The notes: a model not told the origin generated them from the letters alone. A DNA stretch of 64,000 bases from Leucoraja erinacea (GCF_028641065.1 NC_073393.1:16182001-16246000), one strand, 5' to 3'; counted from the stretch's first letter, positions 33,373-61,407 are shown. Numbers and translations are program-made.

Positions 33373-33528
33373 TTACTTTCCGTCATCTTTAACTCTTCGT
33401 GGATTTGCCGTCTGCAGCGCAGCATATTCCGTGATCTTATCCCTAGGTTTAACGTTACCAGCATTCCCGGGTTGAGACAATTCCACAGATGCGTATGTAA
33501 GTACTTCCCGGGCGGTCCGTTGTTTTAC
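33373..33528 (-). CDS. Gene B: terminal cytoplasmic exon with second ITIM (LTYASV) and ITSM-like motif (TEYAAL)
   Basis: ggtttttcag|, phase 0. Encodes VKQRTAREVLTYASVELSQPGNAGNVKPRDKITEYAALQTANPRRVKDDGK*. Confidence 0.82.
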   Translation of the reverse strand, partial: VKQRTAREVLTYASVELSQPGNAGNVKPRDKITEYAALQTANPRRVKDDGK

Positions 33529-34276
33529 CTGAAAAACCAACGGTTGCAAAAGATGTAATTGTTGAACCAGGTTGTGGCCCGCGGATCTAGTCAGGTATCA
33601 AAAACATCCGCACAACTTTAGACGCACCACACTACCAACGTTGGGACAAACGCAGATATTGAGTAAATAGACTGGAGTAAAAAGTGCTGGAGGAACGAAC
33701 ACTGTAGGCCTGGCAACACATGTGGAACAAAAATAACAAACTATGTGATGGATTAAAATGTCGCTTGATTTTTTCATTCCACGGATGCAGGCTGGCCTGG
33801 TGAGGCGTCGTTTTTTTTTTTTTTGCACTGGATTCCATCATCTGCAGTCGCTTGTGCCAACAATCCCAGATATTCAGTGGTTGGTCTGATATTAGTGTAC
33901 ATTATGAATGATGAGGTTTCGGGGCACTTAAAATATTGTGAAACAGGCCGGTCAGCATAGTTCTAAGGGGAGATGGACAAAGGAGAGACCATGGACCATG
34001 TTTACTTGTATTTTCAGGACGCACATGAAGTTTTTAAAGCAAAGATTGACATGTTCTTGATTAGTAAGGTTGTCAAAAATTACAGGGATATGGCAGCAAA
34101 ATTAGGTTGAGTGGGAAATATAGATCAGCCATGATCCAATGACGGAGCAGACTCGATGGGCTGAATGGCCAATACCTGCCCCTGTGTCTCATGATTTATG
34201 ACATTAGGATATGGCTCTTTTGCACCTATTTTCTGCGTCGCTTTCTATGTTTTCTTCATGTGCTGCAGAATCTTAC

Positions 34277-34375
34277 TTGTGCATAGGATGTCTCCTCTTC
34301 GCTTTTCTGTCTCCCTTTCCTTTTGGAATTGCTCATATCTACAGCAGAATAAGTCAGGATGTTGTTCGCCTCAAC
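34277..34375 (-). CDS. Gene B: cytoplasmic exon with ITIM (LTYSAV) and ITSM (TSYAQ|V)
   Basis: ttcttcctgatccatgcag| and CAA|gtaaga, phase 0/0. Encodes VEANNILTYSAVDMSNSKRKGRQKSEEETSYAQ. Confidence 0.82.
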
Positions 34376-35039
34376 CTGCATGGATCAGGAAGAAAATAAT
34401 TCACATGACTGCACAAGTGCCATTATCGTTGCTTGCGTATTTGCCAGTGAGCGCAATGGAGTAATTCCAAACACATACAAAATATATGGTTTATAAATCT
34501 AAAACTATAAGACTTGTATGGGTTTTAAGTAGAATATATCCACTGAACTTAAACTTGATGGGTTTCAGCATCACTAGGTGGAATTACTCAGTTCAAACGT
34601 AAGACTTGGAGCGCTGAATGTAGTTATTATCTACGTATATGCGGAATTAATTAATCCATTTAAGTTGTCTCTTCCTATAACCACTTACACTAACGTCGCA
34701 ACTGCCGGCAAATGAATGTTAAACACAAATTGACAGATTCGCGATAGCGATGGATACTTTTGCGAAATAGTTCTAGCAGAATACTTGTTTTACAACCTTA
34801 TTTATAGATGCTTCAACCGTTTCCTCAAATGTAATATATATGTATATATACATAAATGCATACCGATTCTTCATGGCCCACGGTACTCCTTTGCTCTAAA
34901 AGTTAATGAAATTAAATTATAAATAACGGCAATACATTTCCCCGTGTCCTATTAATACTTTTTTAATGTAACAGTTAAACAAGAGCCTATCATTGTATGC
35001 AGGGAAAGCAATAAGCAATGAGATTAAATAGAATCATGC

Positions 35040-35950
35040 AGTCATAGAGTGATACACTGTGGAAACAGGCCCTTCGGCCCAACTCGTCCACACCGGCCAA
35101 TAATGTTCCAGCTACCCTAGACCCACTTGCCTGCGCTTGGTCCATAACCATCCAAACCTATCCTATCCAGTTAGCGGTCCAACTGTTTCTTAAACGATGG
35201 GATAGTCCCCGACTCAATTACCTCCTTTGGCAGCTTGTTCCATACACCCACTGTGTGAAAAAGTCACCCCTCGGATTCCTATTAAATCTTTTCCCCTTCA
35301 CCTAGAACCTACGTCCTCGATTCCCCAACTCTGGGCAAGACTGTGCATCTACCCGATCTATTCCTCTCGCGATTTAATATATCTCTATCTCCCCTCATCC
35401 TCCTACGCTCCATGGAATAGAGACCCAGCCTACTCAACCTCTCCCTATAGCTCACACCCTCTAGCCCTGGCAACATCCTCGTAAATCTTTTCTGGACCAT
35501 TTCAAGCTTGACAATATCTTTCCTATAACATGGTGTCAAGAACTGAACACAATATTCTAAATGCGGTCTCACCAACTTCTTATACCACTGCAACATGACC
35601 TCCCAACTTCTATACTCAATACTCTGACTGATGAAGGTGCCAAAAGCCTTTTTGACCAACTTGTGACTCGACCTTCAAGGAACCATGCACTTGTACTCCT
35701 AGATCTCTCTGCTCTACAACACTACCCAGAGGCCCACCATTTACTGTGTTGGTCCTGCCCTTACAAAACCACTGACTTTTGTATCATCAGCAAACTTGCT
35801 AATCTGCCCCGTATGTTCTCATCCAAATCATTGATGTAGATGCCAAACAGTAACGGGCCCAGCACCGAACCCTGTGGCACACCACTAGTCACTGGCCTCC
35901 ATTCTGAGAAGCAACCTTCCACTATCACTCTCTGCTTCCTTCCATGGAGC
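35040..35950 (-). mobile_element. CR1 RT fragment within a gene B intron
   Basis: [13 protein letters not shown] and LVRPHLEYCVQF motifs. Confidence 0.8.
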
Positions 35951-37167
35951 ATATTCGTATCCGAGAACATCGTTAAACGATGCAGGACTTTGAGGGTTGG
36001 TGCAATTATAAGAACCGTTCTTTCTTTAACGAGGACATAATGAATTTCACGGAGAGAGGAAACATAAGATTATGTTTCTAGTACGATAGGATTAATTTAA
36101 AATAAACTCGTGAATAATTGAGTTATTTAAGACAGGCGTTATTTAAGAGAGAAACGTTATCTTACTTCAAATGCAGAATGCAACTGTCCATGCAAATACA
36201 ACGTTTACTGTTCATAAATTAATAAATTATAAGAGCAGAATTAAGCCATTCGCCCTATCAATTCTACTCTGTCATTCAATTATGGCTAACCTGTCTTTCC
36301 CTCTCAACCCCATTCTCCTGCCTTCTCCCCATAACCTTTGACACACGTACTAATCAAGAATCTATCACTCTCCGCCATTAAACCTATCCATTCACTTGGC
36401 CTTCATAGTCTTCTGTGGCAATGACTTCCACGGATTCACCATCCTGACTGACGAAATTCCTCCTCACTTTCGTTCTAAATGTACGTCATTTTATTCTAAG
36501 GCTATGGCCTCTGGTCCTAGACTCTCCCACAAGTGGAAACATCCTCAACACATCCCCTCTATCCAGTCCTTTCTGTCTCCTTCTAGTTTCCATGTTTCTT
36601 AATATTCAACGATATTTTTGTGCGTTTACAACATTATTTATTCTAAATCAGGTTAAAAAAACGACAAAATTATATATCTAAGCAACATTAACGTGTTGCT
36701 CAGCATGTCATTATCCAACGGTTACATTGAGATCTATACTGCATTCGTCACATGAGATTTTACTTCAAATACCTTTTCGAAAAAAAAGTGTTCACAACGC
36801 TTAACACTGCTGCGTCTAAATACTACCCCCCTTGACTTCGATTGCGATTGCAAACCTTGTCTATAATGCATCGTATCGCGAAAATGGTTATGAATGAACT
36901 GTGGCGGCGGGAGGTTGGTAGTTGGAGGACTCTTGCAGATACAACCAAATGAGAACTTTTGAAACAATGTTAGAAAGTTTATCAATAAGAGATCATGGTG
37001 TGAATTGAATTTTCATGTGCAGCAAATTAGGATCGTTTTCTACAATTCCTTAATAAACAGCCCAAAGTTTGCATTTGTGGTTGGAAATTATTTTGACATA
37101 TCATATTTAAGTTAAAAGAGTGATCCCGCCAAGCATCCGCTATTTCCTCTCGACTGGGCACTAATAC

Positions 37168-37190
37168 CATCCTGCTCAAAGCAGTTGCAC
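37168..37190 (-). CDS. Gene B: candidate 23-nt linker micro-exon (phase 1 to 0)
   Basis: A phase-changing exon is required between the TM exon (ends phase 1) and the ITIM exon (starts phase 0). tttcag|GTGCAACTGCTTTGAGCAGGATG|gtatta fits (SATALSRM), but both splice sites are weak. Confidence 0.3.
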
Positions 37191-37440
37191 CTGAAATTCA
37201 TCTAGATTTCACTTTTCCATATCTAAAATTCAAACATACTCTTGCAAATAAGCAGAACAATATTTCTATTTCTTTCTTCTGGGATCACTATTAAATTATA
37301 AATACTGAATTATCGGTCATGTCCGGTGCAATTCAAATTCCTGCAAAATTGCATAGCAGCTCTATCATTTAGAAATTGTATTAATTATCTACATTGTTGT
37401 CTAGGTTCTCAGAAAACACATCGGTGAGCATAATACTTAC

Positions 37441-37545
37441 TTTTATTTGTCGAACGGCACCTCAGGACAATGATAAATACAAACACCAAAATGGCGATTC
37501 CACCGACCCCAGAAGCCCAGATATAGAGATATTGGTTGGCGAGTT
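37441..37545 (-). CDS. Gene B: transmembrane exon (uncharged TM)
   Basis: catctttcag| and A|gtaagt, phase 1/1, 105 nt. Encodes ELANQYLYIWASGVGGIAILVFVFIIVLRCRSTNK. Confidence 0.85.
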
Positions 37546-38824
37546 CTGAAAGATGAGGAAAAATAATGAATTACACTGTGGGCACTTTTGATACATTAAA
37601 AGAATAGTTATTGGAATTACTTGTGACTGAACTGATTTCTAAGCTTACGATAACTACACGGAGCAGCGCGAGATAACTGTAAAAAGATAGTCAAATTTGC
37701 ATTTCATTTTTAAAGTATTTTTTATTCTGACATCCGTAATTATTTTTTACTGGCAAAATGTAACATGCGACCTGAGTAATTTGGCTGCCGTGAATAATTT
37801 GCACCGTATCAGTCTCCGGTGTACTGAGCATTATTTAAATCAGGGGAATAAGTATTGGTGGAAGGGAGTAATGTTTATTTTACTTGACTTGGCTTGGCAA
37901 TGGCGCCCCATAGTCTGACTAACAATTCGCTTGAATTGAATAAAATAGTTTATTTAATATCCTTCGCTGATCTGCAGTAGCAAGGATCAGTGCATCATGC
38001 TCATTTTATTGTGTAGGAAAGAACTGCAGATGCTGGTTTAAGGCACAAAATGCTGGGGTAACTCAGCGGGGCAGGCAGCATCTCTGGAAAGAAGGAATGG
38101 GCGCGTTTCGGCCCTTCTTCAGATCCTGCTTATGTTATTATTTGTTAGATCCTGCATCGCGATCGTGCATGTGAAACAGATATAAATAGAGGGCTCGCCA
38201 AGATTGGTCGTCAGTAGCTACTAAATCGGCTACTTCCATCAGCGAGGACAAAAAAAGTAGGCACATTTCGCATTCCACCATCATAGCCGTAGTTCCATAT
38301 ATGTTGCCCTGTGAATACACAGGGATTGCAACCATTATTGAAGGCGGAAACACATTTTCTCGAGCAGCCGGGGTTGGCAATAACCTTAGCCCTCACCATT
38401 GACGCACATATCCAGTTAAAGGTAAAATATAAATATACATTGCCATTATTTCTGTGAATCCATAATTTAGTACCATATTAGTGAAAAAGATTAGGCCATG
38501 TCAAGCAAAGGAGGGGCCTTCCGAGCCCATTGTCCATGGCTTGGAAAGGAAACATCCTGACAGCTCAAGTCTGGAATCTCGAGATGCACTATTTTAGGGG
38601 CAGGCTCCAGAACAAAGACACGTTCCTCGACATCTGTCACGAAATCCGGCAATATAAACTAAACAATAAATTTAGTATGAAGCCTCTGGAGAATGAGCAA
38701 ACGACGCAAAATGTTTAGAGGGAAAATAAATACCATCCCTTCCATCTCATATACATACTTCCAGAGTTACCAGAAATAATAAGTTTTTATGGGACCCGTT
38801 AGAATAGACAGTCATTACGACGAT

Positions 38825-38828
38825 ATTA

Positions 38829-38881
<53 letters not shown>

Positions 38882-38905
38882 ATTATTATTATATTTATTA
38901 TTATT
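38825..38905. repeat. (ATT)n microsatellite in gene B intron 3, absent from the gene C paralog
   Basis: Direct observation. Confidence 0.9.
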
Positions 38906-38994
38906 TGTGATCCCTTTAAACGTAACTTTGTCAACATCAAGAAACGCAGACTTCAATAATAAGTTATAAAATTATACAGTGTTTCAAGTCATAC

Positions 38995-39303
38995 CTTGGT
39001 CGGGTTTGCGAAGGGGTTGCGTGGCAATGGCGGGTCTTTGGAGGGAGATGTGTATCACCAGACAAATGTAAATATTCCCGTTCGCCTCCGACTGCGTCAT
39101 GGATAATGAACTGGAAGCCGTGTACAGCCCTTCACTATTTTTCTGTTTAATGGTATCGACCTTAGCTGTAACAGCAACGCTATTTTTATACCATAGAAGG
39201 GTTAGATCACCCGGGTAAAACTCGGCCGTTTTACAGACAAGCGTTGTAGCTGCAGATGAATTGCTCTCGGATATCCAGTTAATCTTCAGTGGAGTTGGAA
39301 GGT
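38995..39303 (-). CDS. Gene B: Ig C1-set exon (not in the ORF track)
   Basis: cccacag| and G|gtatga, 309 nt, open frame. Encodes DLPTPLKINWISESNSSAATTLVCKTAEFYPGDLTLLWYKN...GLYTASSSLSM...YICLVIHISLQRPAIATQPLRKPDQ. Confidence 0.92.
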
Positions 39304-39801
39304 CTGTGGGACAGAGTGCGAAAATATCATATTACTGGAATGAAATTAAACAGACAGTAGGAGAAGCTTGTTTAGAAATCCACATATTTTACCCGATCCC
39401 TTGAAGACAGAAGATAACGAATTATTGATATCTGTTACCTCATACAGCGGAGGGGAAGAACCGCCGCGGAAAGTTAATTTTGTTTCAACTAAACCAGCGT
39501 TCAATGACATGAAATGTGGAATCTTTTGGAGGTGCAATTGATAGTGATTTATGCTGGATCGTATTTGAAGGTGTGATGATCTCTTGATTGAAAGCTATTG
39601 TTACTTGTCTTGAAATACATCTTATTTGCTGTATTTTAACATATATGTTCGGCATAATAATATTGTACATTCAATAAAACGAGCATCAAATTGTATGGTT
39701 TTCACATAATTTCATGGGGCCCTTCACAAATCGGAACTCTAATATAGAGATATAATTCTTGTGCAATATTCTCAAGTATTCTGTCCACTTTTGTCACTCA
39801 C

Positions 39802-40122
39802 CACATACTGTTAGTTCTGACCCTGTTCCTTCTCCGCTAATTTTCCCCTGACGCATGACTACACAGCGATAGTTTCCCGAATCCTCGTAGGTCGTGTTCA
39901 GTAAACCAAAATATCCGCCTGATCGATTTTTGACGGTGAATCGCTTTCTGCCATCAGCGTCGCTTTGTATATATTCATTCTCCCCCTGTTTTCGCCAACG
40001 CACTTCGATTCCCGAACTGTCATCCGCTAGTGGGATTATGCAGTGAAAGGTGACGTTTGCTCCCTTCAATATAACCTTTCGTTCTGGAATTTGGGTAACG
40101 TGGATCGCAGTTTTTTCAGCAG
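39802..40122 (-). CDS. Gene B: V-set exon with germline-joined J-like G strand (NKp30/SIRP-like V)
   Basis: ccaacag| and G|gtgagt, phase 1/1, 321 nt. Encodes AAEKTAIHVTQIPERKVILKGANVTFHC...VRWRK...EDSGNYRCVVMRQGKISGEGTGSELTVC. Confidence 0.92.
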
Positions 40123-40305
40123 CTGTTGGAAAAACGTTTAAGATTTGGTTAATTATATTCAATGTAGAACCAACTCTTTTGATAGTACATTGGCATGAAA
40201 AACAAAACTAACAGACAAATAGAAAAATACATTTCATCAGTTAAGCCAGGAATAGTTTGGAATATTTTGGCATTTAGACAAGTCTATATGAGATCGTTCA
40301 TGTAC

Positions 40306-40351
40306 CTGTGAAAATAATCACGGCGAGAGACAGAATCAGGACCAGAAACAT
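40306..40351 (-). CDS. Gene B (inhibitory VJ-C1 receptor): signal-peptide exon
   Basis: ATG...ACA G|gtacat, 46 nt, MFLVLILSLAVIIFT; paralogous to 58196-58241. Confidence 0.85.
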
Positions 40352-40500
40352 TGCAGGTTTAACATTCCGAGCAAATCATTCAACTGATGCCTCACTACGA
40401 TATTCACTCTAAGCAATGGTTACTTTGAAATGTGTTGCGATGACGTTTGCCGCTTTTCTTAGGTGGGTGGGACTACACTTCGCATTCGCTGACGAAGGAA
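40352..40500 (-). promoter_or_regulatory. Conserved proximal promoter/5'UTR block of the receptor family
   Basis: The block aaccattgct...gaggcatcagttgaa...tgctcggaatgtt precedes the leader ATG in gene B, gene C (58111-58195) and the diverged relic (about 56565-56727). Confidence 0.55.
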
Positions 40501-40551
40501 CATAAATAAGCGTGCAGCAGGTAACTAACAAAATAGTGTTTGGGAGGTGTT

Positions 40552-40671
40552 TAAGAAGGAACTGCAGATGAGGGAAAATCGAAGGTACACAAAAATGCTG
40601 GAGAAACTCAGCGGGTGCAGCAGCATCTATGGAGCGAAGGAAACAGGCAACGTTTCGGGCCGAAACCCTTC
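40552..40671 (-). mobile_element. Penelope-type terminal-repeat fragment inserted upstream of gene B
   Basis: Flanked by the direct repeat ttgggaggtgtt; the gene C paralog has a single copy of that sequence (about 57601-57613). Confidence 0.75.
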
Positions 40672-42278
40672 TTGGGAGGTGTTGTCTGCAGGGCGAAAGC
40701 GAAGAGAGAAGGTTTTTGAAAATCATTGTAGAATTTGGATCTTAGATTGCAATTAAACTAGCGAATTATCGGAGTTGGGGAATTCCTAAATGCCAGAGAT
40801 CAGGGCAAGATTACCGAGAGTATGGGTCAATATGCGCCGATAATTACAAAACGTGCAATAATTTAATTAAGGGACCCTTGTTTTACTGGACGCCATTGTA
40901 ATTGATCTCGCATGGGGTTATACAATATTTTGCCATAATCGCAGCTATATCCAAGTACAACAACAGATGGAAATGACAAGTCCGAATAGTAGAACTAAAA
41001 GGTAAAATAAGGTCATAGCCGAATGCACCAGGACCATAAAGCAGAGGAAGAATCGGTACTAGGATCAAGATTCAGATTTTGTTGCTATTGGCACCGATAT
41101 TGTCCACTGCTCATCAGAGTCACTTCAACTTTCGACAGCTATCGAGAAGAAGCGTCATGGAATGCGAGAATACCTGTGAGCCCAATGATGCCGATCTAGT
41201 TTCTTAAATACTGGAGATACTCCAGATATACCGGGGGACTGAGGATCTAGTGGGAGGGAGGAACTAAAGGGAATCCACATTAGTGAGGAAATGGTGTGAG
41301 GTGAACTGTTAGGCCTAATGGCAGATAAAAGGATTCAAAGGTTTCAAATGTGTTTTATTGTCACGAGTACCAATTAATAATGTACAGTGAAACTCGGTTT
41401 ACCATATGGCCATACTAAAACATGGAACAAGACACACAACTACATAAAAGTTAACGTATACATCCACAACCTGGGATTCCCCACATTCCTCACTGTGTCA
41501 CAGGCAATAAAGTCTAGTCTTCCCTCTTTATTCTCCCGCGATCGGGGCAGTCGAACCATCTGCAGTCGGTGCGATCGAAGCTCCCGCAGCCGGCGAAGCA
41601 GCGACCCGGTGGACGTTAATAAATCCCCAGGGCCAGATGGTCTGCATCCCATACTCACGGAGGTGGCCCTAAAAAGCATGGATGTAACAGGTGTAACAGA
41701 CTGTTTACCCTCCTACCATCCGGGAGGCGCTACAGGTCTCTCCGTTGCCGGACCAGCAGGTCCAGGAACAGCTTCTTCCCTGCGGCTGTCACACGCCTCA
41801 ACAATGTACCTCTGTAACTGCCAATCACCCCACCCCCGGACACTCCTCCCACAGGAAAAAAACACTATGTCTGTATACATGTAAATAGATTAATTTATTG
41901 AAATCATATTCTATGTCGCTCTTCCAGGGAGATGCTAACTGCATTTCGTTGTCTCTGTACTGTACACTGACAATGACAATTAAAGTTGAATCTGAATCTG
42001 AATCTGATATAATGTTTGACTAATCTTTTGGATTTGTTCGAGGATATAACAAGTATAATAGATAAGGGAGTGCGAGTGGATGTGGTGTATCTGGACTTTC
42101 AAAAATACTTTGACAAGGACTCACACAAGAGTTTAGTGTGCAAAATTAGAGCACATGGTATTGCTGGTAGGGTATTGACATGGAATTGAGCTTAAAGGAC
42201 TTGATATTGCAATCCCCACAACAATTGGCACCTTCTTAATATCTTGAGGGGGTAGGGGTAAAGACATAATTGGTGCCA

Positions 42279-44215: not shown

Positions 44216-44261
44216 CTATACATCTTTTTCTTGGGGTGGAGTTCGCATCATGCCACCATAT

Positions 44262-47220: not shown

Positions 47221-47751
47221 TTAGAAACATAGAAACATAGAAATTAGGTGCAGGAGTAGGCCGTTCGGCCCTTCGAGCCTGCACCGCAATTCAATATGAT
47301 CATGGCTGATCATCCAACTCAGTATCCCGTACCTGCCTTCTCTCCATATCCCCTGATCCCCTTAGCCACAAGGGCCACATCTAACTCCCTCTTAAATATA
47401 GCCAATGAACTGGCCTCAACTACCCTCTGTGGCAGAGAGTTCCAGATATTCACCACTGTCTGTGTGAAAAAAGTTCTTCTCATCTCGGTTTTAAAGGATT
47501 TCCCCCTTATCCTTAAGCTGTGACCCCTTGTCCTGGGCTTCCCTAACATCGGGAACAATCTTCCCGCTTCTAGCCTGTCCAACCCCTTAAGGATTTTGTA
47601 AGTTTCTATAAGATCCCCTCTCAATCTCCTAAATTCTAGAGAGTATAAACCAAGTCTATCCAGTCTTTCTTCATAAGACAGTCCTGACATCCCAGGAATC
47701 AGTCTGGTGAACCGTCTCTGCACTCCCTCTATGGCAATAATGTCCTTCCTA

Positions 47752-48616
47752 AGATAATAAGATAAGATAAGATAAGATACATTTATTGTCATTTGGACCC
47801 CTTGAGGTCCAAACGAAATGCCGTTTCTGCAGCCATACATACAAACACATAGACCCAAGACACAACATAATTTACATAAACATCCATCACATCGCTGTGA
47901 TGGAAGGCCAAATAAACTTATCTCTCCACTCCACCGCACCCTCCCCCCCCCCCATGTCAGAGTCAAAGTCAAAGCCCCCGGCTGGCGATGGCAATTGTCC
48001 CGCGGCCATTTAAGCCACGCCGGGTGGTGCGAGGTCGCACACCGGGTCTTGGTGTTAGAGCCCCCGGTGTGCGCTCGCAGAGTCCCGCGGCCATTCCCAG
48101 CCGCGCGGGGCGGTGATGTTAGGCCCCGCTCCAGGAGCTCTTCAACCCCGCAACTCGGGCGGGGGAAGTCGCCGTTGCGAGAGCCCTGAAAAGCGGTCTC
48201 CCTCCAGGGAGCCGCGGGCTCCCGGTGCCGCCGTCCACAGACCTGCCGTTGAAGCCTCCGACTCTCCGGTCGGGCCGCAGCAGCAGCAGCAGCAGCGCTC
48301 CTCCACCGCTCCACCCGCTCCGGACTCGGCCAGCCCCGCGACGGCGACGGTGAGTCGTAGCACCAGAGTCCCCGGTCTCTTCCTGTTGGAGGCCGCTCCT
48401 CGTTGCGGCCCCAACGACAACGGAAACCCGACGAGAAAAGGTCGGGTCTCCAGTGCAGGGAGAGATTTAAAAAGTTTCCCCCCCCCTCCCACCCCCCCCC
48501 CACACACACACCCAACAACAAAAATAACAAAAACTACATTAAAACACAGACAGAAAATAATAAAACGCGGACAGACTGCAGAGGCCGCTGCTGGCCAGAG
48601 CCGCGCCGCCCACCAC
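47752..48616 (-). mobile_element. Non-coding GC-rich ~0.85 kb retro-type element inserted into CR1 ORF2
   Basis: (taaga)n tail with aataaa on the minus strand. Related copies at about 44262-45075 and 20772-21600. CR1 resumes at cagatttggagacc. Confidence 0.65.
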
Positions 48617-50424
48617 AGATTTGGAGACCAAAATGTACGAAATACTCCAGGTGTGGTCTCACCAAGACCCTGTACAACTGCAGTAGAACCTCCCTGCTCC
48701 TATACTCAAATCCTTTTGCAATGAAAGCTAACATACCATTCGCTTTCCTTACTGCCTGCTGCACCTGCATGCCTACCTTCAATGACTGGTGTATCATGAC
48801 ACCCAGGTCTCGCTGCATCTCCCCCTTTCCCAATCGGCCACCATTTAGATAATAGTCTGCTTTCCCGTTTTTGCCACCAAAATGGATAACCTCACATTTA
48901 TCCACATTATACTGCATCTGCCAAACATTTGCCCACTCACCCAGCCTATCCAAGTCACCTTGCAGTCTCCTAGCATCCTCCTCACAGCTAACACTGCCCC
49001 CCAGCTTAGTGTCATTCGCAAACTTGGAGATGTTGCCTTCAATTCCCTCATCCAGATCATTAATATATATCGTAAATAGCTGGGGTCCCAGCACTGAGCC
49101 TTGCGGTACCCCACTAGTCACTGCCTGCCATTGTGAAAAGGACCCGTTTACTCCTACTCTTTGCTTCCTGTTTGCCAGCCAGTTCTCTATCCACATCAAT
49201 ACTGAACCCCCAATGCCGTGTACTTTAAGTTTGTATACTAATCTCTTTTGTGGGACCTTGTCGAAAGCCTTCTGGAAGTCCAGATACACCACATCCACTG
49301 GTTCTCCCCTATCCACGCTACTAGTTACATCCTCGAAAAATTCTATAAGATTCGTCAGACATGATTTACCTTTCGTAAATCCATGCTGACTTTGTCCAAT
49401 GATTTCACCACTTTCCAAATGTGCTGCTATCCCATCTTTAATAACTGACTCTAGCAGTTTCCCCACTACCGATGTTAGACTAACTGGTCTGTAATTCCCC
49501 ATTTTCTCTCTCCCTCCCTTCTTAAAGAGTGGGGTTACGTTTGCTACCAGCCAATCTTCAGGAACTACTCCAGAATCTAAAGAGTTTTGAAAGATTATTA
49601 CTAATGCATCCACTATTTCTGGAGCTAATTCCTTAAGTACTCTGGGATGCAGCCTATCTGGCCCTGGGGATTTATCGGCCTTTAATCCAGTCAATTTACC
49701 CAACACCACTTCCCGGCTAACCTGGATTTCACTTAAATTCCTCCAACTCCTTTGACCCGCGGTCCCCTGCTATTTCCGGCAAATTATTTATGTCTTCCTT
49801 AGTGAAGATGGAACCAAAGTAGTTATTCAATTGGTCCGCCATATCCTTGTTCCCCATGATCAACTCACCTGTTTCTGACTGCAAGGGACCTACATTTGTT
49901 TTAACTAATCTCTTTCTTTTCACATATCTATAAAAACTTTTGCAGTCAGTTTTTATGTTCCCTGCCAGTTTTCTTTCATAATCTATTTTTCCTTTCCTAA
50001 TTAAGCCCTTTGTCCTCTGCTGGTCTTTGAATTTCTCCCAGTCCTCCAGTATGCTGCTTTTTCTGGCTAATTTGTACGCATCATCCTTCGCTTTGATACT
50101 ATCCCTGATTTCCCTTGTTATCCATGGATGTACTACCTTCCCTGATTTATTCTTTTGCCAAACTGGGATGAACAATTTTTGTAGTTCATCCATGCAGTCT
50201 TTAAATGCCATTGCATATCCATCATCAACCCTTTTAGAATTAATTGCCAGTCAATCTTGGCCAATTCACGTCTCATACCCTCAAAGTTACCTTTCTTTAA
50301 GTTCAGAACCATTGTTTCTGAATTAACAATGTCACTCTCCATCCTAATGAAGAACTCAACCATATTATGGTCACTCTTGCCCAAGGGGGCACGTACAACA
50401 AGATTGCTAACTAACCCTTCCTCA

Positions 50425-51910
50425 TGGAAGTAGTTCCAGAGGATTGGCGGGTAGCAAACGTAACCCCGCTTTTTAAGAAGGGAGGGAGAGAGAAAACGGG
50501 GAATTACAGACCAGTTAGCCTAACATCGGTAGTGGGGAAACTGCTAGTCAGTTATTAAAGATGGGATAGCAGCACATTTAGAAAGTGGTGAAATCATTGG
50601 ACAAAGTCAGCATGGATTTACGAAAGGTAAATCATGTCTGACGAATCTTATAGAATTTTTCGAGGATGTAACTAGTAGCGTGGATAGGGGAGAACCAGTG
50701 GATGTGGTGTATCTGGACTTCCAGAAGGCTTTCGACAAGGTCCCACATAAGAGATTAGTATACAAACTTAAAGCACATGGCATTGGGGGTTCAGTATTGA
50801 TGTGGATAGAGAACTGGCTGGCAAACAGGAAGCAAAGAGTAGGAGTAAACGGGTCCTTTTCACAATGGCAGGCAGTGACTAGTGGGGTACCGCAAGGCTC
50901 AGTACTGGGACCCCAGCTATTTACAATATATATTAATGATCTGGATGAGGGAATTGAAGGCAATATCTCCAAGTTTGCGGATGACACTAAGCTGGGGGGC
51001 AGTGTTAGGTGTGAGGAGGATGCTAGGAGACTGCAAGGTGACTTGGATAGGCTGGGTGTGTGGGCAAATGTTTGGCAGATGCAGTTTAATGTGGATAAAT
51101 GTGAGGTTATCCATTTTGGTGGCAAAAACGGGAAAGCAGATTATTATCTAAACGGTGGCCGATTGGGAAAGGGGGAGATGCAGCGAGACCTGGGTGTCAT
51201 GGTACACCAGTCATTGAAGGTAGGCATGCAGGTGCAGCAGGCAGTAAAGAAAGCGAATGGCATGTTGGCTTTCATAGCAAGAGGATTTGAGTATAGGAGC
51301 AGGGAGGTTCTACTGCAGTTGTATAGGGTCTTGGTGAGACCACACCTGGAGTATTGCGTGCAGTTTTGGTCTCCAAATCTGAGGAAGGACATTATTGCCA
51401 TAGAGGGAGTGCAGAGAAGGTTCACCAGACTGATTCCTGGGATGTCAGGACTGTCTTATGAAGAAAGACTGGATAGACTTGGTTTATACTCTCTAGAGTT
51501 TAGGAGATTGAGAGGGGATCTTATAGAAACTTACAAAATTCTTAAGGGGTTGGACAGGCTAGATGCAGGAAGATTGTTCCCGATGTTGGGGAAGTCCAGG
51601 ACAAGGGGTCACAGCTTAAGGATAAGGGGGAAATCCTTTAAAACCGAGATGAGGAGAACTTTTTTCACACAGAGAGTGGTGAATCTCTGGAACTCTCTGC
51701 CACAGAGGGTAGTTGAGGCCAGTTCATTGGCTATATTTAAGAGGGAGTTAGATGTGGCCCTTGTGGCCAAGGGGATCAGAGGGTATGGAGAAAAGGCAGG
51801 TACGGGATACTGAGTTGGATGATCAGCCATGATCATATTAAATGGCGGTGCAGGCTCGAAGGGCCGAATGGCCTACTCCTGCACCTAATTTCTATGTTTC
51901 TATGTTTCTA
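50425..51910 (+). mobile_element. 5'-truncated CR1 of the same subfamily inserted in opposite orientation within the host CR1
   Basis: ORF 50680-51813 is an RT (FADDTK) ending in a (ttctatgt)n tail. Host sequence continues across the insertion (ctcat...tcaatacccag). Confidence 0.88.
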
Positions 51911-54004: not shown

Positions 54005-55720
54005 TTAACAGAGAAGCAACCTGTTGAATGTTTTGTCATCCATCTTTACTGGTTTTAATATGTGGGTCAGAAAGTCAAGGTTGCAGGTGCTGTGGGATTG
54101 CTGAGTGCGAGGTAGAAGAGTTTGAACATTCGTAATTATTGAGCTGAAGGCTAAGCTTTCGAGAATAAATAGGGGTCCGACATGCGTTCCAGGGATCAAC
54201 CTTTTTCCAGGAGATGGCGTTGCCACTGACTTATCATAGTTGAATTGCTGTGGAGCAATGTTACGTGGAAGGCTGGAGTTGTTTTGTGCCAAGACCAGCC
54301 TCGAAAAGTAGTTCATGGTGGTGGGCGACAGAGCCATCTGGTGGCATTCATCAATCCGTGCTACTTTGTCATTTAGTAATGAGATGGTCGCACACTTCTT
54401 AAAGCGAGTGGACACATCGGAATGAACTAAGGAGCAAGTAAAAATGTCCACGGTTATTCTAGTAGCAGGCTCCCCTGTGTCCCTTTGAAGGCACTGCCAG
54501 AGACTTCTTCAGTTCCTTCCTGCAGGTTCAATCTCAAGAAGATCGATTTGGCGTCAGCAATGGTGAACATGGTTATTGGTGCTCCTAAGGTTGTCGGGGC
54601 AGATAGCGTCATTCCACTGAACGTATGTTGAAAACTAGCATTGAATACAAAGAGCGACACTGGGAAGGATGCGTTGTTAGCGGCCATACTGTATGGCTTC
54701 CCATTATAGCCTATTATAGCATGCGAGCCTTGCCACAATCAACGGGTGGCTGCGCAGTTATTCTGGGATTCTAGCTTGGTCTCGATTTGTTTCTTCGCAC
54801 CCTTCATGGCTTTATTTGAGTTTGTGTTTTAGGTTAGTTTATGGTCACGTGTACTGAGGTACAGTGAAAAGCTTTTGTTGCTTGCTAACCAGTCAGCGGA
54901 AAGACAATACATGAATACAATCGAGCAGTGTACAGATACATGATAAAGGGAATAACGTGAATAACGTCTAGTGCAAGATTAATTCAGTAAAGTCCGATCA
55001 AAGAATGTCCGAGGATCTCCAATGAGGTAGATAATAGTTCTGGACTGCTCTCTAATTGTTGGTAGGGTGGTTCAGTTGCCTGATAACATAGGAAATAGGT
55101 GCAGAAGGAGGCCATTCAGCCCTTCGAGCCAGCACCGCCATAACAGCTGGGAAGAACTGTCCCTGTAAGTTTTCACACTTCTTATGCCTTTTTCCCCTTG
55201 GGAGAAGGGAAAAGTGGGACTGACCGTGCAGCGACTCGTCCTTGATTATGCTGATAGCCTTGCGGAAGCAGCGTGAGTGTAAATGGTGTCAGAAGGGAGG
55301 TTGCTTTGTGTGATGGTCTAAGCTGCGACCACAATCCTCTGCAATTTCTTCCTTTCTTGGATGGGGCTCTTGGCAAACCATGCTGTGATGGATGCATCCT
55401 GATAACATATATTCTACCGCACATCTGCAGAAGTTGGGGAAAGATGTTGGGGACTTGTTGAACTTCCTCAGCCTTCTAAAGAAGTAGAGGCGTTAGTGTG
55501 CTTTCTTAGCCATTACTTCAATATGGATGGTCCAGGCCAAGTTGTTGGTGATATTTACCCCGAGGAATTTGAAGCTTTCAACCAGCTCTACTTCAGCGCC
55601 GCCAATGCAAACGGATTCGCTTCCTGACGCCAACTACTAGATCCTTTGTCTTGCTGAAATTGCGAGAAAGATTATTGTCTCGACACCAGGTGCACTCTCC
55701 GCCGCTTCATTGTCATTTCC
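54005..55720 (-). mobile_element. Degenerate Rex1/Babar-like LINE fragments
   Basis: Remnants resembling CLNDYRPVALT..MKCFERLVL (seen here as CHQMALSPTTMNYFSRLVLAQNNSSLP). Confidence 0.45.
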
Positions 55721-56727
55721 ACGGGCAATCTGAGTGAAAATAAAATTTCCCCGATTAACTATGGTGGACGGCACTATTTGTCGTTCGTCTCAATTCCCAA
55801 TTCCGTCACCTAGCCATCGATCAGAAACACTTTTGAATAGATGTTGGAAACAGAAACAGCATACACATGATTTGGAATTAAAAAAATACACAGATGGAGC
55901 AATTGATCAGGTAAGGCAGCATACGTGGACGTCGACATTTCTGGTCGAGCTTTTTCTCCAGTTTGAGCTTTGATCCAGATTATAGCATCTACGGTCCCTT
56001 GTGGCTCCACTGTACACGATTTTGTGTCAATTCTGACATTCTCGTTAGTAATGGGCATATTTGTGTGAACACAGTACTCAGAATGCTCATTTTTGAGTTG
56101 CAAACCCACATGCCTATGTGGCTTTGAAGCACTTATCCATTCTTTTATTTTCTCTTTACTATTCGAAGATGTCGTGTTTGCTCCGTTGTACCTACATAAC
56201 GCTGCTGCGATGGCCGTTTCTAATCGCATTGGCTTCGTACAGCAGAATCTCAAAAGATGTCCGGCGAATCAGCGCCTCCGCACTTAAATTATTGCACTTT
56301 TTTGTAAATCGCTACTTAACTTCTCTTTGTATCCCTCCAATCTCGTTGTAATCTTTGATATTTGGAAATTCTTCAAAGTCGGTGTTCTAATGTTTCCCAA
56401 ATACAATTGCGATCGTGTCACCAGCTACTATGCCCAGAATTGTGCAACTGTTTCAAAAACGTATTTGCACTCTTTCCTCGTGTAAAACTCCCATCCATCC
56501 ATTTTGTTTTTCGGACTATTGTCCTGTGACTGACTTATGGTATGGCAGCAGTTGTATTCTTCTTTCCGTTCCTTCGCCAACGAATGAAAAGTGGGAACCT
56601 ACACACGTAAGAATGACGATAAACGTCAATGCGACGCTTTGCGAGGTACAACAAGGCAACCATTGCTCGCATTCATTGACGTGACGAGGCATCAGTTGAA
56701 CGATATGCTCGGAATGTTATAACAGCA

Positions 56728-56998
56728 ATGTTTCTCTTCCAGCTCCTGTCTCTCTCGATGATGTTTTATACAGGTATCCTTATATTTTCTTTGAAACTAT
56801 TTTAAATGCCAGGTTAAAACGCGCGAAATTAATTTTTCCATATGTCGCTGTTTAACGAATCATACCCAAATTTATCTGGAGTGAACCATTCCAAGCTCAA
56901 TATTACCAATCAAATTGTGTACCAGTTTTGCAGCAGGTGCCGAAGAAACTGCGATCCACGTGACTCAAATTCCGGAGATAGTGGTTATATTGATGGGC
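56728..56998 (+). pseudogene. Truncated paralog: leader exon (56728-56773) plus first ~20 codons of a V exon (from 56937)
   Basis: MFLFQLLSLSMMFYT G|gtatcc, then gcag|GAEETAIHVTQIPEIVVILMG, which matches AAEKTAIHVTQIPERKVILKG. Homology stops before the first V-domain Cys. Confidence 0.8.
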
Positions 56999-57719
56999 TC
57001 ACAGATATTCTCGAATTCCATGACGATCTACGCAATTAAAATCGAAAACTATGCAACTAAAACCACTTTATGTTCGCTAACTGGATTCCCGCTAAATGCG
57101 ATTCTTCCCGATAGCTGTCGAAAGCTGAAGTAGACTCTACTCGGTGTTAAATTTGACATCCAGATGAGCAGTGGACAATATCGGTGCCAACAGCAACAAA
57201 ATCTGAATCTTGATCCCAGTACCGTTTCTTCCTCTGCTTTATGGCCCTGATGCATTCGGCTATGACGTTCTTTTACCTTTTAGTTCTACTATTCGGACTT
57301 GTCATTTCCATCTGTTGTACTTGGATATACTTGCGATGATGGCAAAATATTGTATAACCCGATGTGAGATCAATTACAATGGCGTCCAGCAACACAGGGG
57401 TCCCTTAATTAATTTACTGCACGATTTGTAATTATCGGCGCAAATTGTTCCATACTCTCTCTGTAATCTCGCCCTGATCTCTGGCATTTAGAGATTCCAC
57501 AACTCTGATAAGTCTGATAATTCCCTAGTTTAATTGCAATCTAAGAGCTAAATTCAACAATTATTTTTAAAAACCTCCCCGCTTCGCTTTAGCCCTGCAA
57601 AAACACCTCCCAAACATTATCTTGTTAGATACCAGCTACACTCTTACTTATGTTCCTTCAGCGAATGCGAAATGTAGTCCCACCCACGTAAGAAAACGCG
57701 CCAAACTTCATCGCAACAT

Positions 57720-58110
57720 ATAAGATTGAAACATATAAGATTGTTAAGGGTTTGGACACACTGGAGGCAGGAAACATGTTCCCGATGTTGGGGGAGTCCA
57801 GAACCAGGGAGCACAGTTTAAGAATAAGTAGTAAGCCATTTAGAACGGAGACGAGGAAACACTTTTTCACACAGAGAGTTGTGAGTGTGGAATTATCTGC
57901 CTCAGAGAGCGGTGGAGGCAGGTTCTCTGGATGCTTTCAAGGGAGAGCTAGATAGGACTCTTAAAGATAGCGGAGTCAGGGGATATGGGGAGAAGGCAGG
58001 AACGGGGTACTGATTGGGGATGATCAGCCATGATTACATTGAATGGCGGTGCTGGCTCGAAGGGCCGAATGGCCTAATCTTACACCGATTGTCTATTGTC
58101 TTTTGTCTAT
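57720..58110 (+). mobile_element. CR1 3' fragment inserted in the gene C proximal promoter
   Basis: CR1 3' end (GESRTREHSL...FFTQRVV) with a (ctattgt)n tail. The empty site catcgcaacacatttc is present at the gene B paralog. Confidence 0.85.
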
Positions 58111-58195
58111 AACACATTTCAAAGTAACCATTGCTTAGAGTGAATATCGTAGTGAGGCATCAGATGAATGATTTGCTCGGAATGTTAAAACTGCA

Positions 58196-58241
58196 ATGTT
58201 TCTGGTCCTGATTCTGTCTCTCTCCGTGATTATTTTCACAG
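58196..58241 (+). CDS. Gene C (putative activating VJ-C1 receptor): signal-peptide exon
   Basis: MFLVLILSLSVIIFT, donor G|gtacat, 46 nt. Confidence 0.85.
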
Positions 58242-58424
58242 GTACATGAACGATCTCGTATAGACTTATCTAAATGCCAAAATATTCCAAACTATTCCTG
58301 GCTTAACTGATGAAATGTATTTTTCAATTTGTCTGTTAGTTTTGTTTTTCATGCCAATGTACTATCAAAAGAGTTGGTTCTACATTGAATATAATTAACC
58401 AAATCTTAAACGTTTTTCCAACAG

Positions 58425-58745
58425 CTGCTGAAAAAACTGCGATCCACGTTACCCAAATTCCAGAACGAAAGGTTATATTGAAGGGAGCAAACGTCACCTT
58501 TCACTGCATAATCCCACTTGCGGATAACAGTTCGGGAATCGAAGTGCGTTGGCGAAAACAGGGCGAGAATGAATATATACAAAGCGACGCTGATGGCAGA
58601 AAGCGATTCACCGTCAAAAATAGATCAGGCGGATATTTTGATTTACTGAACACGACCTACGAGGATTCGGGAAACTATCGCTGTGTAGTCATGCGTCAGG
58701 GGGAAATTAGCGGAGAAGGAACAGGGTCAGAACTAACAGTATGTG
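58425..58745 (+). CDS. Gene C: V-set (VJ-type) exon
   Basis: ccaacag| and G|gtgagt, 321 nt. Differs from the gene B V exon at 3 amino acids. Confidence 0.92.
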
Positions 58746-59249
58746 GTGAGTGACGAAAGTGGACAGAATACTTGAGAATATTGCACAAGAATTATATCTC
58801 TATATTAGACTTCCGATTTGTGAGAGAGAAGGGCCCCATGAAATTATGTGAAAACCATACAATTTGATGCTCGTTTTATTGAATGTACAATATTATTATG
58901 CCGAAAATATATGTTAAAATAAAGCAAATAAGATGTATTTTAAAACAAGTGACAATAGCTTTTAATCAAGAGATCATCACACCTTCAAATACGATTCAGC
59001 ATCAATCACTATCAATTGCACCTCCAAAAGATTCCACATTTCATGTCATTGAACGCTGGTTGAGTTGAAACAAAATTAACTTTCCGCGGCGGTTCTTGCG
59101 CTCCGCTGTATGAGGTAACAGATATCAATAATTCGTTAACTTCTGTCTTCAAGGGATCGGGTAAAATATGTGGATTTCTAAACAAGCTTCTCCTACTGTC
59201 TGTTTAATTTAATTCTAGTAATATGATATGTTCGCACTCTGTCCCACAG

Positions 59250-59558
59250 CCCTTCCAACTCCACTGAAGATTAACTGGATATCCGAGAGCAATTCATCTG
59301 CAGCTGCAACGCTTGTCTGTAAAACGGCCGAGTTTCACCCGGGTGATCTAACCCTTCTATGGTATAAAAATAGCGTTGCTGTTACAGCTAAGGCTAATAC
59401 CATTAAACAGAAAAATAGTGAAGGGTTGTACACGGCTTCCAGTTCATTATCTATGACGCAGTCGGAGGCCAGCGGGAATATTTACATTTGTCTGGTGATA
59501 CATATCTCCCTCCAAAGACCCGCCATTGCCACGCACGCCCTTCGCAAACCCGGTCAAG
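59250..59558 (+). CDS. Gene C: Ig C1-set exon
   Basis: cccacag| and G|gtatga, 309 nt. Encodes ALPTPLKINW...LVCKTAEFHPGDLTLLWYKN...YICLVIHISLQRPAIATHALRKPGQ. Confidence 0.92.
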
Positions 59559-60092
59559 GTATGACTTGAAACACTGTATAATTTTATAACTTATTATTGA
59601 AGTCTGAGTGTGTTGATATTGACAACGTTTGTTTTAAAAGGATCACAAATGCCATTCATATCATCGTAAACACTGTCTACTCTAACGGGTCCCAGAACGA
59701 CTCGTTATTTCAGGTAAATGTCGAAATGTGAAGGGATGGCATTCATATTCGCTCGAAATATTTTGCATTGTTTGCTCGTTACTAAGCATTCCCCGGAAGC
59801 CTCATACTAAAGCAATTGTTTAGTGCATGTTACTGAATTTGCTAACAGATGTCTAGTTACCGCCCTAAATTGGTGTAACCCCTTCATTTTGGAGACGCTT
59901 TTTAAAAAAGTTCTAGAATTCAGCTAATTGTCAGAAAGTTTCCATTACAAGCCAGGGGGCAATGGCCTTGGACGCTACTTCTTTCTCTCAGTCTGAAGAA
60001 GGGTCACAGCCCGAAATGTCATGCATTCCTTCTATCCAGAGAAACTGTCTATCTTCAGTTTAAACCAGCATCTGCAGTTATTTCCTACACAG

Positions 60093-60353
60093 CTACTGCC
60101 TTTATTCCCTTTATCCCTTCACGTCTGTGAAACGTCCGAGTTTCACCCGAGCAAGTTAACTCTTGTATGGCATAAACATGGCACTGTAGTTACAACTGGG
60201 GCTAATAGCGTTAAACAGAAACATACTGAAGGGCTGTACGCAGTTTCTACTTCATTGTCCATGACACAGTCGGAGCCGAATGGAAAGGTTTACATTTATC
60301 TGGTGTCTCATACCTCCCTCCAAAGAGTCGCAAATTCAACGTCGTTTTCAAAG
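60093..60353 (+). pseudogene. Degenerate duplicate C1 exon in the C1-TM intron of gene C
   Basis: VCETSEFHPSKLTLVWHKHG...GLYAVSTSLSMTQSEPNGKVYIYLVSHTSLQR. The second Cys is replaced by Tyr, the 5' end is replaced by a Penelope-type fragment, and the retained gtatgac donor is now phase 0. Confidence 0.8.
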
Positions 60354-61311
60354 GTATGACTTAAAAACACTTTGACGTTTTGTAACCTACGATTCAATTC
60401 TGAGTTTGTGGATGATAAATCATGAAAATTGAGAAGCAAATAATACTATCCTCGTAAATAGCATTGACACAATTCTCCAGAAAATTCCCGCAAAATTTGT
60501 TATTTTCAAATTGTGGAAACGAATTAGAAGGGGCGGTTTTGACGTTTGCTCCACACACAACCACTTGCAGCTCTTTATTGGATTCCTGTTCCTATCATTG
60601 TGGATTCACCCCGATGTGTAATCCTGTGTATAAAAAATGACGTCCCTTCCAACCTGCTTGGATTTAAAGCAGGGAACTGTTTCATAACTTGTTTCTGGTC
60701 AAGCGCCGTATGGTGGGTTTCAACAATTACTATTGGTTATTTTGATCGGCATGGACGAGCTGGGCCAATGGCCGGTTTCCGTGCTGTTTCACTCAATATA
60801 ATAATTTCATGTGGGGGGCGATGGTGGGGAGCCATTTATTGCCAATCGCTAAACGTTTTTTGAGAGGACAGGGCGTCCTGGGACTTACTACATTGTATTT
60901 ACCATATGATAATGACCGCAGGTTAATATCCTTATGATCTGCAGGCGTGTCGGGAAAAAGTACTTGATACTGTACATAAGGGAAAGAAGATTTGCCTTGG
61001 ACCTCAACCAAATCAGCACTTCCCTAAGACGATGGAGCTTTGTGTGCTGCTGCATTCCAATTAAAAGTGAAGGAATATATCCACCCCATCCCCCTCATCC
61101 TCCATCCTACTTATTTGTCTGAAATTAAACTCGGTGGCAATTTATTCATTCCACTCTTCGGGACAACGTTGTTTCTAATATCCGATTTTAGCATAATGTT
61201 TTTGCATGTAATTATGAGCGAAAGCAAATCATCAAATTCTAAAGAGATTTTTTAAAACAAACAATGGTCGGCTCAAAGTAGAATTCAGTATCTGTCATTC
61301 TAAACTTGCAG

Positions 61312-61407
61312 AAACAGCCATCTGGAGTTCTGTCCGTCCGGCGGTTGTAATCGCATTTTTGTTCATTATGACTGTCATTGTCGGATTCTGCAAACTGAAG
61401 AATAACT
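61312..61407 (+). CDS. Gene C: transmembrane exon with Arg at the outer end of the TM
   Basis: aacttgcag| and T|gtaagtattatg (same donor context as the gene B TM exon), phase 1/1, 96 nt. Encodes ETAIWSSVRPAVVIAFLFIMTVIVGFCKLKNN. Confidence 0.8.

Follow-up and report, generated by a model that had tools for sequence, protein, structure and literature searches.

Whether two linked genes of the little skate (Leucoraja erinacea) encode a paired inhibitory and activating receptor system is the question raised by the window analysed here, a 64-kb stretch of DNA (64,000 nt) that holds only members of one gene family and repeats. The two genes, B and C, lie head to head and are divergently transcribed, with their ATGs 17.8 kb apart. 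The original prediction was that they carry near-identical leader, V and C1 exons on an antigen-receptor-like VJ-C1 scaffold but have different downstream exons, B ending in an uncharged transmembrane (TM) segment with four ITIM/ITSM motifs and C in an Arg-containing TM segment without an ITIM tail. It also took the host to be a cartilaginous fish, as Leucoraja erinacea is. Each feature named in that prediction was found at the position given for it.

Old paralogues with a recently homogenised 5' part

B and C are joined by one inverted match of 1540 nt with 96.2% identity, recovered with both self-BLAST and a repeat finder, between a B-side arm (38903-40436) and a C-side arm (58111-59650). 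The B-side arm takes in the 5' UTR, the exons for leader, V and C1, and a further 92 nt, and the size of the match is far beyond chance. The arms differ at 59 of the 1540 aligned positions, in a graded pattern. The exons within the block are 96-98% identical at the nucleotide level (differences: leader 1/46, V 6/321, C1 15/309), with 13 amino-acid changes together and a pN/pS of about 0.45.

Identity between the genes has three levels: a core that starts 85 nt before the ATG and stops 92 nt after the end of C1 reaches 96-100%, an older common upstream flank (40672-41115 on the B side and 57163-57613 on the C side, 88.6%) about 89%, and the sequence just past C1 65-70%, after which nothing is alignable downstream. 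The TM exons have 54% nucleotide identity. Thus, the 3' parts are old and the likeness of the 5' part is recent, and the predicted contrast between shared ectodomain exons and different downstream exons is borne out. As judged from sequence, the sharp identity edge of the ectodomain block agrees with gene conversion having acted on old paralogues. A public contig encodes a further, third variant of the V exon (P0001), a mosaic that suggests the existence of conversion tracts, and a truncated relic of the family is found just upstream of C (56728-57007). A single large palindrome spanning 38.9-59.65 kb was considered and rejected, as its two sides have no sequence in common over the interval that separates the gene arms from the LINE pair.

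An ITIM-tailed product and a predicted Arg-TM product

Gene B consists of seven exons on the minus strand, with AG/GT sites throughout and consistent phases. Exon 1 (40306-40351) carries the ATG and most of the signal peptide; the leader is split by a phase 1 intron, and its final residues are encoded in the V exon (39802-40122, 321 nt). The V exon encodes a compact V/I-type Ig domain (Pfam Ig_3 and V-set, model pLDDT >85) with 59 residues between the cysteines and a J-like GEGTGSELTV end (motif GxGTGSxLxV), and is followed by a C1-set exon (38995-39303; Pfam C1-set, E 8.6e-14). The structure model resembles an Ig light chain in Foldseek. Split leader, single-exon V, J-like G strand and Pfam C1-set domain (E 5e-14) together agree with the VJ-C1 scaffold that had been proposed. 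The TM exon (37441-37545) is uncharged, with IWASGVGGIAILVFVFIIVL followed by RCRSTNK, and a helix is predicted at residues 226-261.

Three cytoplasmic exons follow, also on the minus strand. The first (34864-34895, 32 nt) comes from the joined exon model; it was absent from the exon list of the original prediction and is required for the reading frame of B. The second (34277-34375) encodes LTYSAV, an ITIM, and TSYAQV minus its last V, and the third (33373-33528) supplies that V, LTYASV, TEYAAL and the stop. The joined model (33373-40351, minus strand) encodes 355 aa and is identical over its full length to RefSeq XP_055504649.1. Its tail of 103 aa contains the four tyrosine motifs LTYSAV (Y280), TSYAQV (Y302), LTYASV (Y316) and TEYAAL (Y339), which are alignable in skate, sawfish, rays and two sharks, a third shark having a shorter model, and to some extent in a chimaera. 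The predicted product of B is a conserved ITIM/ITSM receptor, the inhibitory form of the pair.

Gene C lies on the plus strand, with a leader exon (58196-58241) that differs from that of B by 1 nt, a V exon (58425-58745) with 6 nt and 3 amino-acid differences, and a C1-set exon (59250-59558) with 15 nt and 9 amino-acid differences. Its TM exon (61312-61407, phase 1 in and out, bounded by AG and GTAAGT) encodes IWSSVRPAVVIAFLFIMTVIVGFC and then KLKNN; its product (...AIWSSVRPAVVIAFLFIMTVIVGFCKLKNN) has a single Arg near the outer end, four residues past the conserved Trp. Being close to the membrane edge, this Arg might lie at the interface, a point against the reading preferred below. The acceptor of this exon has a weaker pyrimidine tract than that of B, and no close match to the C TM peptide was found among about 190 fetched proteins. 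A counterpart of the first cytoplasmic exon of B (63313-63347) preserves the reading frame, finishes in phase 0 and is followed by a GTAAGT donor. Frame, phases and canonical splice sites are thus kept in the TM exon and the next exon despite their age. Between C1 and TM, directly behind a SINE piece, there is a degenerate second C1-like exon (60123-60355, plus strand) that is out of phase, 78% identical to C1, devoid of the A strand and with Tyr in place of the second Cys; we regard it as a probable pseudo-exon.

The RefSeq model of C (XP_055505063.1, 228 aa) lacks the TM exon and runs from C1 into the intron (GMT, stop). No AATAAA or ATTAAA is present within 540 nt after C1, and therefore the RefSeq end looks like that of a model that is probably incomplete. 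Thus, the predicted Arg is present in an in-phase exon with canonical sites, but its use in mRNA is not mirrored in RefSeq, which stops after C1. The predicted absence of an ITIM tail holds to the extent that no ITIM-type exon was found in 61408-64000; however, the C-terminus cannot be defined within the window, because at 63347 the frame is still open, and the window stops at 64000, 650 nt past the last recognisable C exon. Four RNA runs of unspecified tissue (5-25% of each read, about 1-2 Gb apiece), mapped to 58100-64000, gave zero depth on the C exons, which allows no verdict on expression or splicing; at 95% likeness, this implies zero depth on the V and C1 exons of B as well. Coverage was confined to the SINE piece and a LINE 3' end, from reads of other copies.

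Relatives in cartilaginous fishes and in known receptor families

Relatives of B and C were found in at least twelve cartilaginous-fish species, with B searched via its RefSeq protein and C exon by exon. A whole-protein search with B matched cartilaginous-fish relatives only, and a tail-only search (P0012, residues 257-406) matched nothing outside the family; both searches are word-based, so that a blank means little. Both B and C are already RefSeq models, and SIRP-alpha/beta-like is the automatic name of the family in a chimaera and in many sharks and rays, with six or more different automatic names overall. The claim that the pairing is easy to miss was therefore overstated. No description of this family was found in a full-text literature search; it is annotated in databases, without description in the literature searched.

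An internal Arg or Lys is present in the TM of 15 of 70 distinct family TM-plus-tail sequences, 13 of which are without ITIMs (median tail 29 aa), while ITIMs are found in 38 of the 55 sequences without such a residue (median tail 100 aa). The association is significant (Fisher p = 2e-4), with the limit that the 70 sequences are not independent. A TM Arg and one ITIM occur together in a single relative, P0043. The corresponding TM position, the Gly of W-x-S-G-C, is occupied by Arg in several relatives. In catshark, P0181, with an ITIM tail, clusters at 90% identity with P0165, P0180 and P0182, which have an Arg TM and a 7-aa tail; at the sequence level this repeats the B/C pattern of inhibitory versus Arg-TM forms in another species. 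Stingray Arg-TM relatives retain an exon of the 63313-63347 type and stop 7-15 residues after it. The activating reading of C is a candidate supported by this family evidence. Accordingly, of the predicted paired system, the linked and similar ectodomains, the ITIM-bearing member and the Arg-TM/ITIM duality in relatives all stand, but the activating role of C is inferred.

Among known receptors, the SIRPs of mammals and birds share with B a V domain that does not rearrange, has a J-like end and precedes C1-set sequence. As probably in B and C, one member is inhibitory, with four ITIM-type tail tyrosines, another is devoid of ITIMs and has a basic TM residue, and the ectodomains are very similar within the gene cluster. 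The four-motif tail of B may be likened to that of SIRP-alpha; SIRP-beta-1 has a mid-TM Lys, as opposed to the Arg near the outer TM end in C. SIRPs differ in having two membrane-proximal C1-set domains, against one in B and C (plus the out-of-phase relic in C). The compact V/I-type domain of B and C has no specific match to SIRP V, and their J-like motif (GxGTGSxLxV) is a variant form with two additional residues. SIRP-alpha d1-d2 (2wng) was the fifth best of 177,635 PDB sequences for the family profile. Among the top five PDB matches, SIRP-alpha had the best single V-C1 stretch (66.6 bits), against 64.8 for an Ig lambda-type chain and 55.8 for UrIg2; Ig light chains score about equal to SIRP against this profile. 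A V-only profile did not place the V domain in PDB, where multi-domain I-set proteins dominate the matches. SIRP would be the closest non-rearranging relative, and the skate genes are at most candidate members of the SIRP family.

UrIg2 (9dmx) was the second best PDB match both for the C1 exon and for the family profile. In elasmobranchs, UrIg and UrIg2 are antigen-receptor-like genes that do not rearrange; they have a split leader, a VJ encoded in one exon and C1-type domains (PMC12227049). B and C resemble the UrIg family in the split leader, the single-exon VJ and the occurrence in cartilaginous fish. However, UrIg2, with its 9-11 C domains, makes IgG-like dimers, ITIMs not being mentioned in that paper (PMC12227049), whereas genes of the B and C type have a single C1, end in ITIMs or an Arg TM and occur in many copies. 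A UrIg-family gene would be expected to have three or more C domains, against the one C1 exon of B and C. Teleost NITRs, mammalian KIR/LILR/PIR and Siglec-11/16 occur as clusters of ITIM and charged-TM forms in which gene conversion keeps the ectodomains alike (PMC3533184, PMC5112662). The pairing logic is the same as in B and C, but those receptors belong to other lineages and combine V with I-type or C2-type domains, not V with C1. A few relatives of B and C carry the RefSeq names NCR3-like or NCR3LG1-like, after NKp30 (NCR3) and B7H6. NKp30 resembles B and C in its compact VJ domain, and C also in its TM Arg, but is without a C1 domain; in every PDB search made, both NKp30 and B7-H6 were absent from the best 60 matches.

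Competing readings and significance

On balance, B is probably the inhibitory member and C its counterpart without an inhibitory tail, as linked members of a cartilaginous-fish multigene family of non-rearranging V-C1 genes with ectodomains alike by conversion, as far as sequence can tell. The family product would consist of a V domain encoded by a single exon with a J-like end, behind a split leader, with one C1 and a TM segment, made without rearrangement. Ligand binding to B would lead to phosphorylation of the four ITIM/ITSM tyrosines and recruitment of an SH2 phosphatase. C would present nearly the same ligand-binding part on an old, diverged TM exon, most likely with no inhibitory tail, and the Arg in the outer third of its TM may link it to an ITAM-bearing adaptor like FcR-gamma or DAP12. 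The ectodomain exons may have been kept alike through gene conversion or through recent replacement of the 5' part.

The strongest of the competing readings, which we judge unlikely yet worth serious weight, is that C does not signal, being either a soluble V-C1 protein (possibly a decoy) or a decaying or unexpressed copy with a relic TM exon. The RefSeq model that stops three codons into the intron past C1, the zero RNA reads in four runs, the pseudo-exon and SINE in the intron before the TM exon and the truncated relic just upstream (56728-57007) would all suit it. Against it, there is no AATAAA or ATTAAA within 540 nt after C1, and frame, phase, splice sites and a long stretch of hydrophobic residues are preserved in the TM exon and the one after it, although the intron around them is unalignable to B; the pN/pS of the common exons is also about 0.45, not 1. 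C could instead be a second inhibitory receptor with ITIM exons past the window end, as its in-frame copy of the first cytoplasmic exon of B, with a good donor, and the combination of TM Arg and one ITIM in P0043 might suggest. This is improbable, as the ITIM exon of B lies 490 nt past cytoplasmic exon 1 and has no counterpart in the 650 nt available in C, the stingray Arg-TM relatives end 7-15 residues past the same exon, and ITIMs are absent from 13 of 15 family members with a TM Arg or Lys.

The names given by RefSeq, NITR (NITR 1d) for B and tapasin-related protein for C, are very probably wrong: they are automatic labels among six or more used within one family, the second domain of B is a Pfam C1-set, which NITRs lack, and C is without the tapasin N-terminal domain, passing directly from signal peptide to V and matching only Ig families. 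Misassembly can in principle yield near-identical inverted copies, but no sign of it was found, and an artefactual inverted copy is hardly credible given the graded differences at 59 of 1540 positions, the differing upstream repeat insertions, the entirely different downstream exons, the separate RefSeq genes for B and C and the public contig with the third V-exon variant. A wider and more tentative form of the preferred reading, in which B and C are an inhibitory receptor and its counterpart without an inhibitory tail, is that the family may be an undescribed chondrichthyan counterpart of NK and myeloid paired receptors, either a sister or ancestor of SIRP or a relative of antigen-receptor precursors. 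In it, activating forms would have arisen recurrently via Gly-to-Arg changes at one TM position and tail loss, with conversion keeping the ligand-binding parts matched.

In practical terms, the automatic gene names in this family are inconsistent and the RefSeq model of C is probably incomplete. Pairing an inhibitory with an activating receptor is an answer that has recurred against pathogens that mimic self ligands, and the best-known paired families (KIR, LILR, SIRP and NITR) come from bony vertebrates. If the preferred reading is true, SIRP-type pairing, or a convergent antigen-receptor-like version of it, would be placed at the base of jawed vertebrates, and a many-copy family would be added to the few non-rearranging VJ-C1 genes (UrIg, UrIg2) that inform the origin of antibodies and T-cell receptors.

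The inverted block and its surroundings

Two divergent paired receptor genes had been claimed at this locus, and this observation is confirmed. Gene B, the inhibitory receptor on the minus strand (ATG at 40351), and gene C, its putative activating partner on the plus strand (ATG at 58196), carry the arms of the single long inverted match in the window (38903-40436 against 58111-59650; 1540 nt, 96.2% identity). In each arm the leader is followed by a 321-nt Ig V-type exon and then a 309-nt C1-set exon, with Pfam matches on both arms (V-set/Ig_3, E 5e-9 to 1e-6; C1-set, E 5e-14 and 9e-14). Further upstream is an older shared flank (40672-41115 against 57163-57613, 88.6% identity). The shared exons differ at 1 nt in the leader, 6 nt in V and 15 nt in C1, giving 13 amino-acid changes and a pN/pS of about 0.45. 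Past C1 the genes diverge from each other.

Starting 85 nt before the ATG, identity is 96-100% as far as about 92 nt past C1, declining slowly from 5' to 3'. It is about 89% in the upstream flank, 65-70% in the next 300 nt of intron past the block, beyond which the copies are unalignable, and 54% in the transmembrane (TM) exons. These tiers indicate that the 3' halves are old paralogues and that the 5' halves were homogenised recently. Gene conversion or replacement of the 5' part could have produced this pattern; conversion between old paralogues is favoured by the residual 65-70% homology just past the block boundary. That the inverted copy is an assembly artefact is very unlikely, given the graded differences between the arms, their different repeat insertions and the different exons that follow. 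The V exon of P0001, a family protein from a public contig, has two of three diagnostic residues as in C and the third as in B, and is either a further allele or a recombinant.

The DNA between B and C contains LINE and other retroelement debris. An inverted LINE pair with reverse-transcriptase ORFs (47222-49709 and 50425-51910, 97% alike) lies about midway, and the stretches separating it from the gene arms are not palindromic. The post-C1 introns of both genes hold the same piece of a SINE-type repeat (59990-60091 and 38010-38123), with heavy RNA coverage from reads of other copies. Elsewhere there is a minisatellite (26228-26755, about 11 copies of a 48-nt unit, 76-89% alike) and an N run (29487-29947).

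A third family gene, A, belongs to another subfamily (3657-3947, 8685-8789 and 13842-14042, plus strand). Its C1 exon is followed by an uncharged TM exon (LPWWIPLC...) and then by a cytoplasmic exon that is basic and lacks ITIMs, and it resembles P0050 and P0060, proteins of stingray and bamboo shark. No V exon was detected for it in the window; this exon is probably located before the window start. A relic of another member is found 1.2 kb upstream of gene C (56728-57007, plus strand), with an intact leader exon (MFLFQLLSLSMMFYT), an intron and the first ~20 V-exon codons, after which similarity stops.

Genes B and C past the C1 exon

The seven exons of gene B agree in phase, are bounded by AG/GT sites and encode a 355-aa protein identical residue for residue to Leucoraja erinacea XP_055504649.1 ("novel immune-type receptor 1d"). 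Both tail exons of the original prediction (34277-34375 and 33373-33528) are in the RefSeq model; its exon list lacked a 32-nt exon (34895-34864) that is needed to keep the frame. The TM of B carries no charge, and the tail carries four motifs (LTYSAV Y280, TSYAQV Y302, LTYASV Y316 and TEYAAL Y339). Sawfish, manta, stingray and two of three sharks (the third being catshark, whose model is shorter) have the same four in alignment, and elephant shark has them in part, so the tail is under long-term constraint. In an AlphaFold model made from a 29-sequence family alignment, both Ig domains are confident, residues 226-261 form a TM helix and the tail is disordered; the model's best Foldseek matches are Ig light chains (E ~1e-15). 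The inhibitory half of the pair is well supported.

The TM exon of gene C (61312-61407, plus strand; phase 1 in and out, as in B) encodes ...AIWSSVRPAVVIAFLFIMTVIVGFCKLKNN, in which a single Arg lies four residues past the conserved Trp and is followed by 18 uncharged residues. Next comes a counterpart of the first cytoplasmic exon of B (63313-63347, plus strand), homologous and in frame, with a GTAAGT donor and a 3-nt length difference. No ITIM exons like B's are present in the last 650 nt of the window, after this exon, so that, with the frame and donor intact, the window does not define the C-terminus of C. The kept exon is no argument for an ITIM tail, because stingray Arg-TM members keep the homologous exon and end 7-15 residues later. 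RefSeq XP_055505063.1 ("tapasin-related protein-like", 228 aa) has leader, V and C1, then three intron-encoded residues and a stop. No poly(A) signal occurs within 540 nt past its end, so this looks like an unfinished model and not a genuine short form. Gene C can reasonably, if with moderate confidence, be taken as the activating half of the pair.

Read-through of the donor past 63347 would add 28 codons with YINF-x7-YTLL (ITAM-like; 63348-63485), with a stop at 63432, then ATTAAA at 63448 and AATAAA at 63479; this is an after-the-fact observation, with a chance of about 1 in 100 in AT-rich DNA. Directly behind the SINE piece of gene C is a degenerate partial C1 copy (60123-60355, plus strand, 78% identity to C1), out of phase, without the A strand and with the second Cys changed to Tyr, which is probably unused. 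In both proteins a Cys ends the J-like strand (LTVC; 39802-39807 and 58740-58745). It lies outside both intradomain pairs, is found in only some relatives and could form an interchain disulfide.

Four species-labelled RNA runs of unknown tissue (5-25% of each run read) were mapped on 58100-64000 at 95% likeness. Depth is zero on all C exons, and likewise for B V and C1, since their reads would also map there at this likeness; only two repeats are covered.

Placement among known receptor families

Against all PDB sequences, the top match of the family profile is an IgA1 construct, with UrIg2 in second place; SIRP-alpha (2wng) comes fifth, and SIRP-gamma is in the top 25. The best single V-C1 stretches are SIRP-alpha (66.6 bits), an Ig lambda-type chain (64.8) and UrIg2 (55.8), placing the family about as near to SIRP as to the antigen receptors. 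With 59 residues between its cysteines, the V domain is compact, and alone it matches I-set domains and shark IgNAR V, not SIRP V; the J-like motif is longer by two residues. The family differs from SIRP in the number of C1 domains, and so falls outside it on this count. A split leader and single-exon VJ, stressed for antigen-receptor-type genes in the UrIg2 paper (PMC12227049), are common to the family and UrIg/UrIg2; however, the latter have many C domains, and the words ITIM and inhibitory are absent from that paper, whereas B has an ITIM tail. Of the RefSeq names, NITR (gene B) is rejected because the second domain is C1-set, and tapasin-related (gene C) because the N-terminal tapasin domain is missing.

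Distribution and pairing in cartilaginous fishes

B and C are not new as genes: RefSeq includes both, and the family has automatic annotation. A full-text literature search found no description of the family or its pairing, although with few subscription journals covered this is weak evidence of absence. A complete HMMER scan with the V exon finds 196 proteins (E <=1e-3). All V-C1-architecture hits whose source was looked up are from cartilaginous fish (Callorhinchus, Heterodontus, Heptranchias, Scyliorhinus, Mustelus, Chiloscyllium, Hemiscyllium, Pristis, Mobula, Hemitrygon, Hypanus and Leucoraja); two reptile matches have a different architecture, with three V. Automatic RefSeq names include SIRP-alpha-like (PTPNS1-like), SIRP-beta-1-like, tapasin-related-like, NCR3LG1-like, CD276 homolog, Ig lambda-like, MHC class II beta-like and NITR. 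In sawfish (Pristis pectinata), gene-A-like and gene-B-like proteins (P0004, P0029 and P0191) have consecutive RefSeq accessions (XP_051884092 to XP_051884095), a hint of a conserved A-B neighbourhood in batoids.

Among 70 distinct TM-plus-tail sequences, 15 have an internal TM Arg/Lys (13 without ITIM, two with; median tail 29 aa) and 55 do not (17 without ITIM, 38 with; median tail 100 aa), under a rule that missed several more Arg-TM, short-tail members. The association of TM charge with ITIMs (Fisher p = 2e-4) is descriptive, not a strict test, as the sequences are related. Catshark, smooth-hound and stingray members have Arg in place of the Gly of W-x-S-G-C (giving W-x-x-R-C), and the TM Arg of skate gene C lies one position later than in these relatives. 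Catshark P0181, with an ITIM tail, and P0165, P0180 and P0182, with an Arg TM and a 7-aa tail, fall in a common 90%-identity cluster. These catshark proteins are a second, independent case of the pairing.
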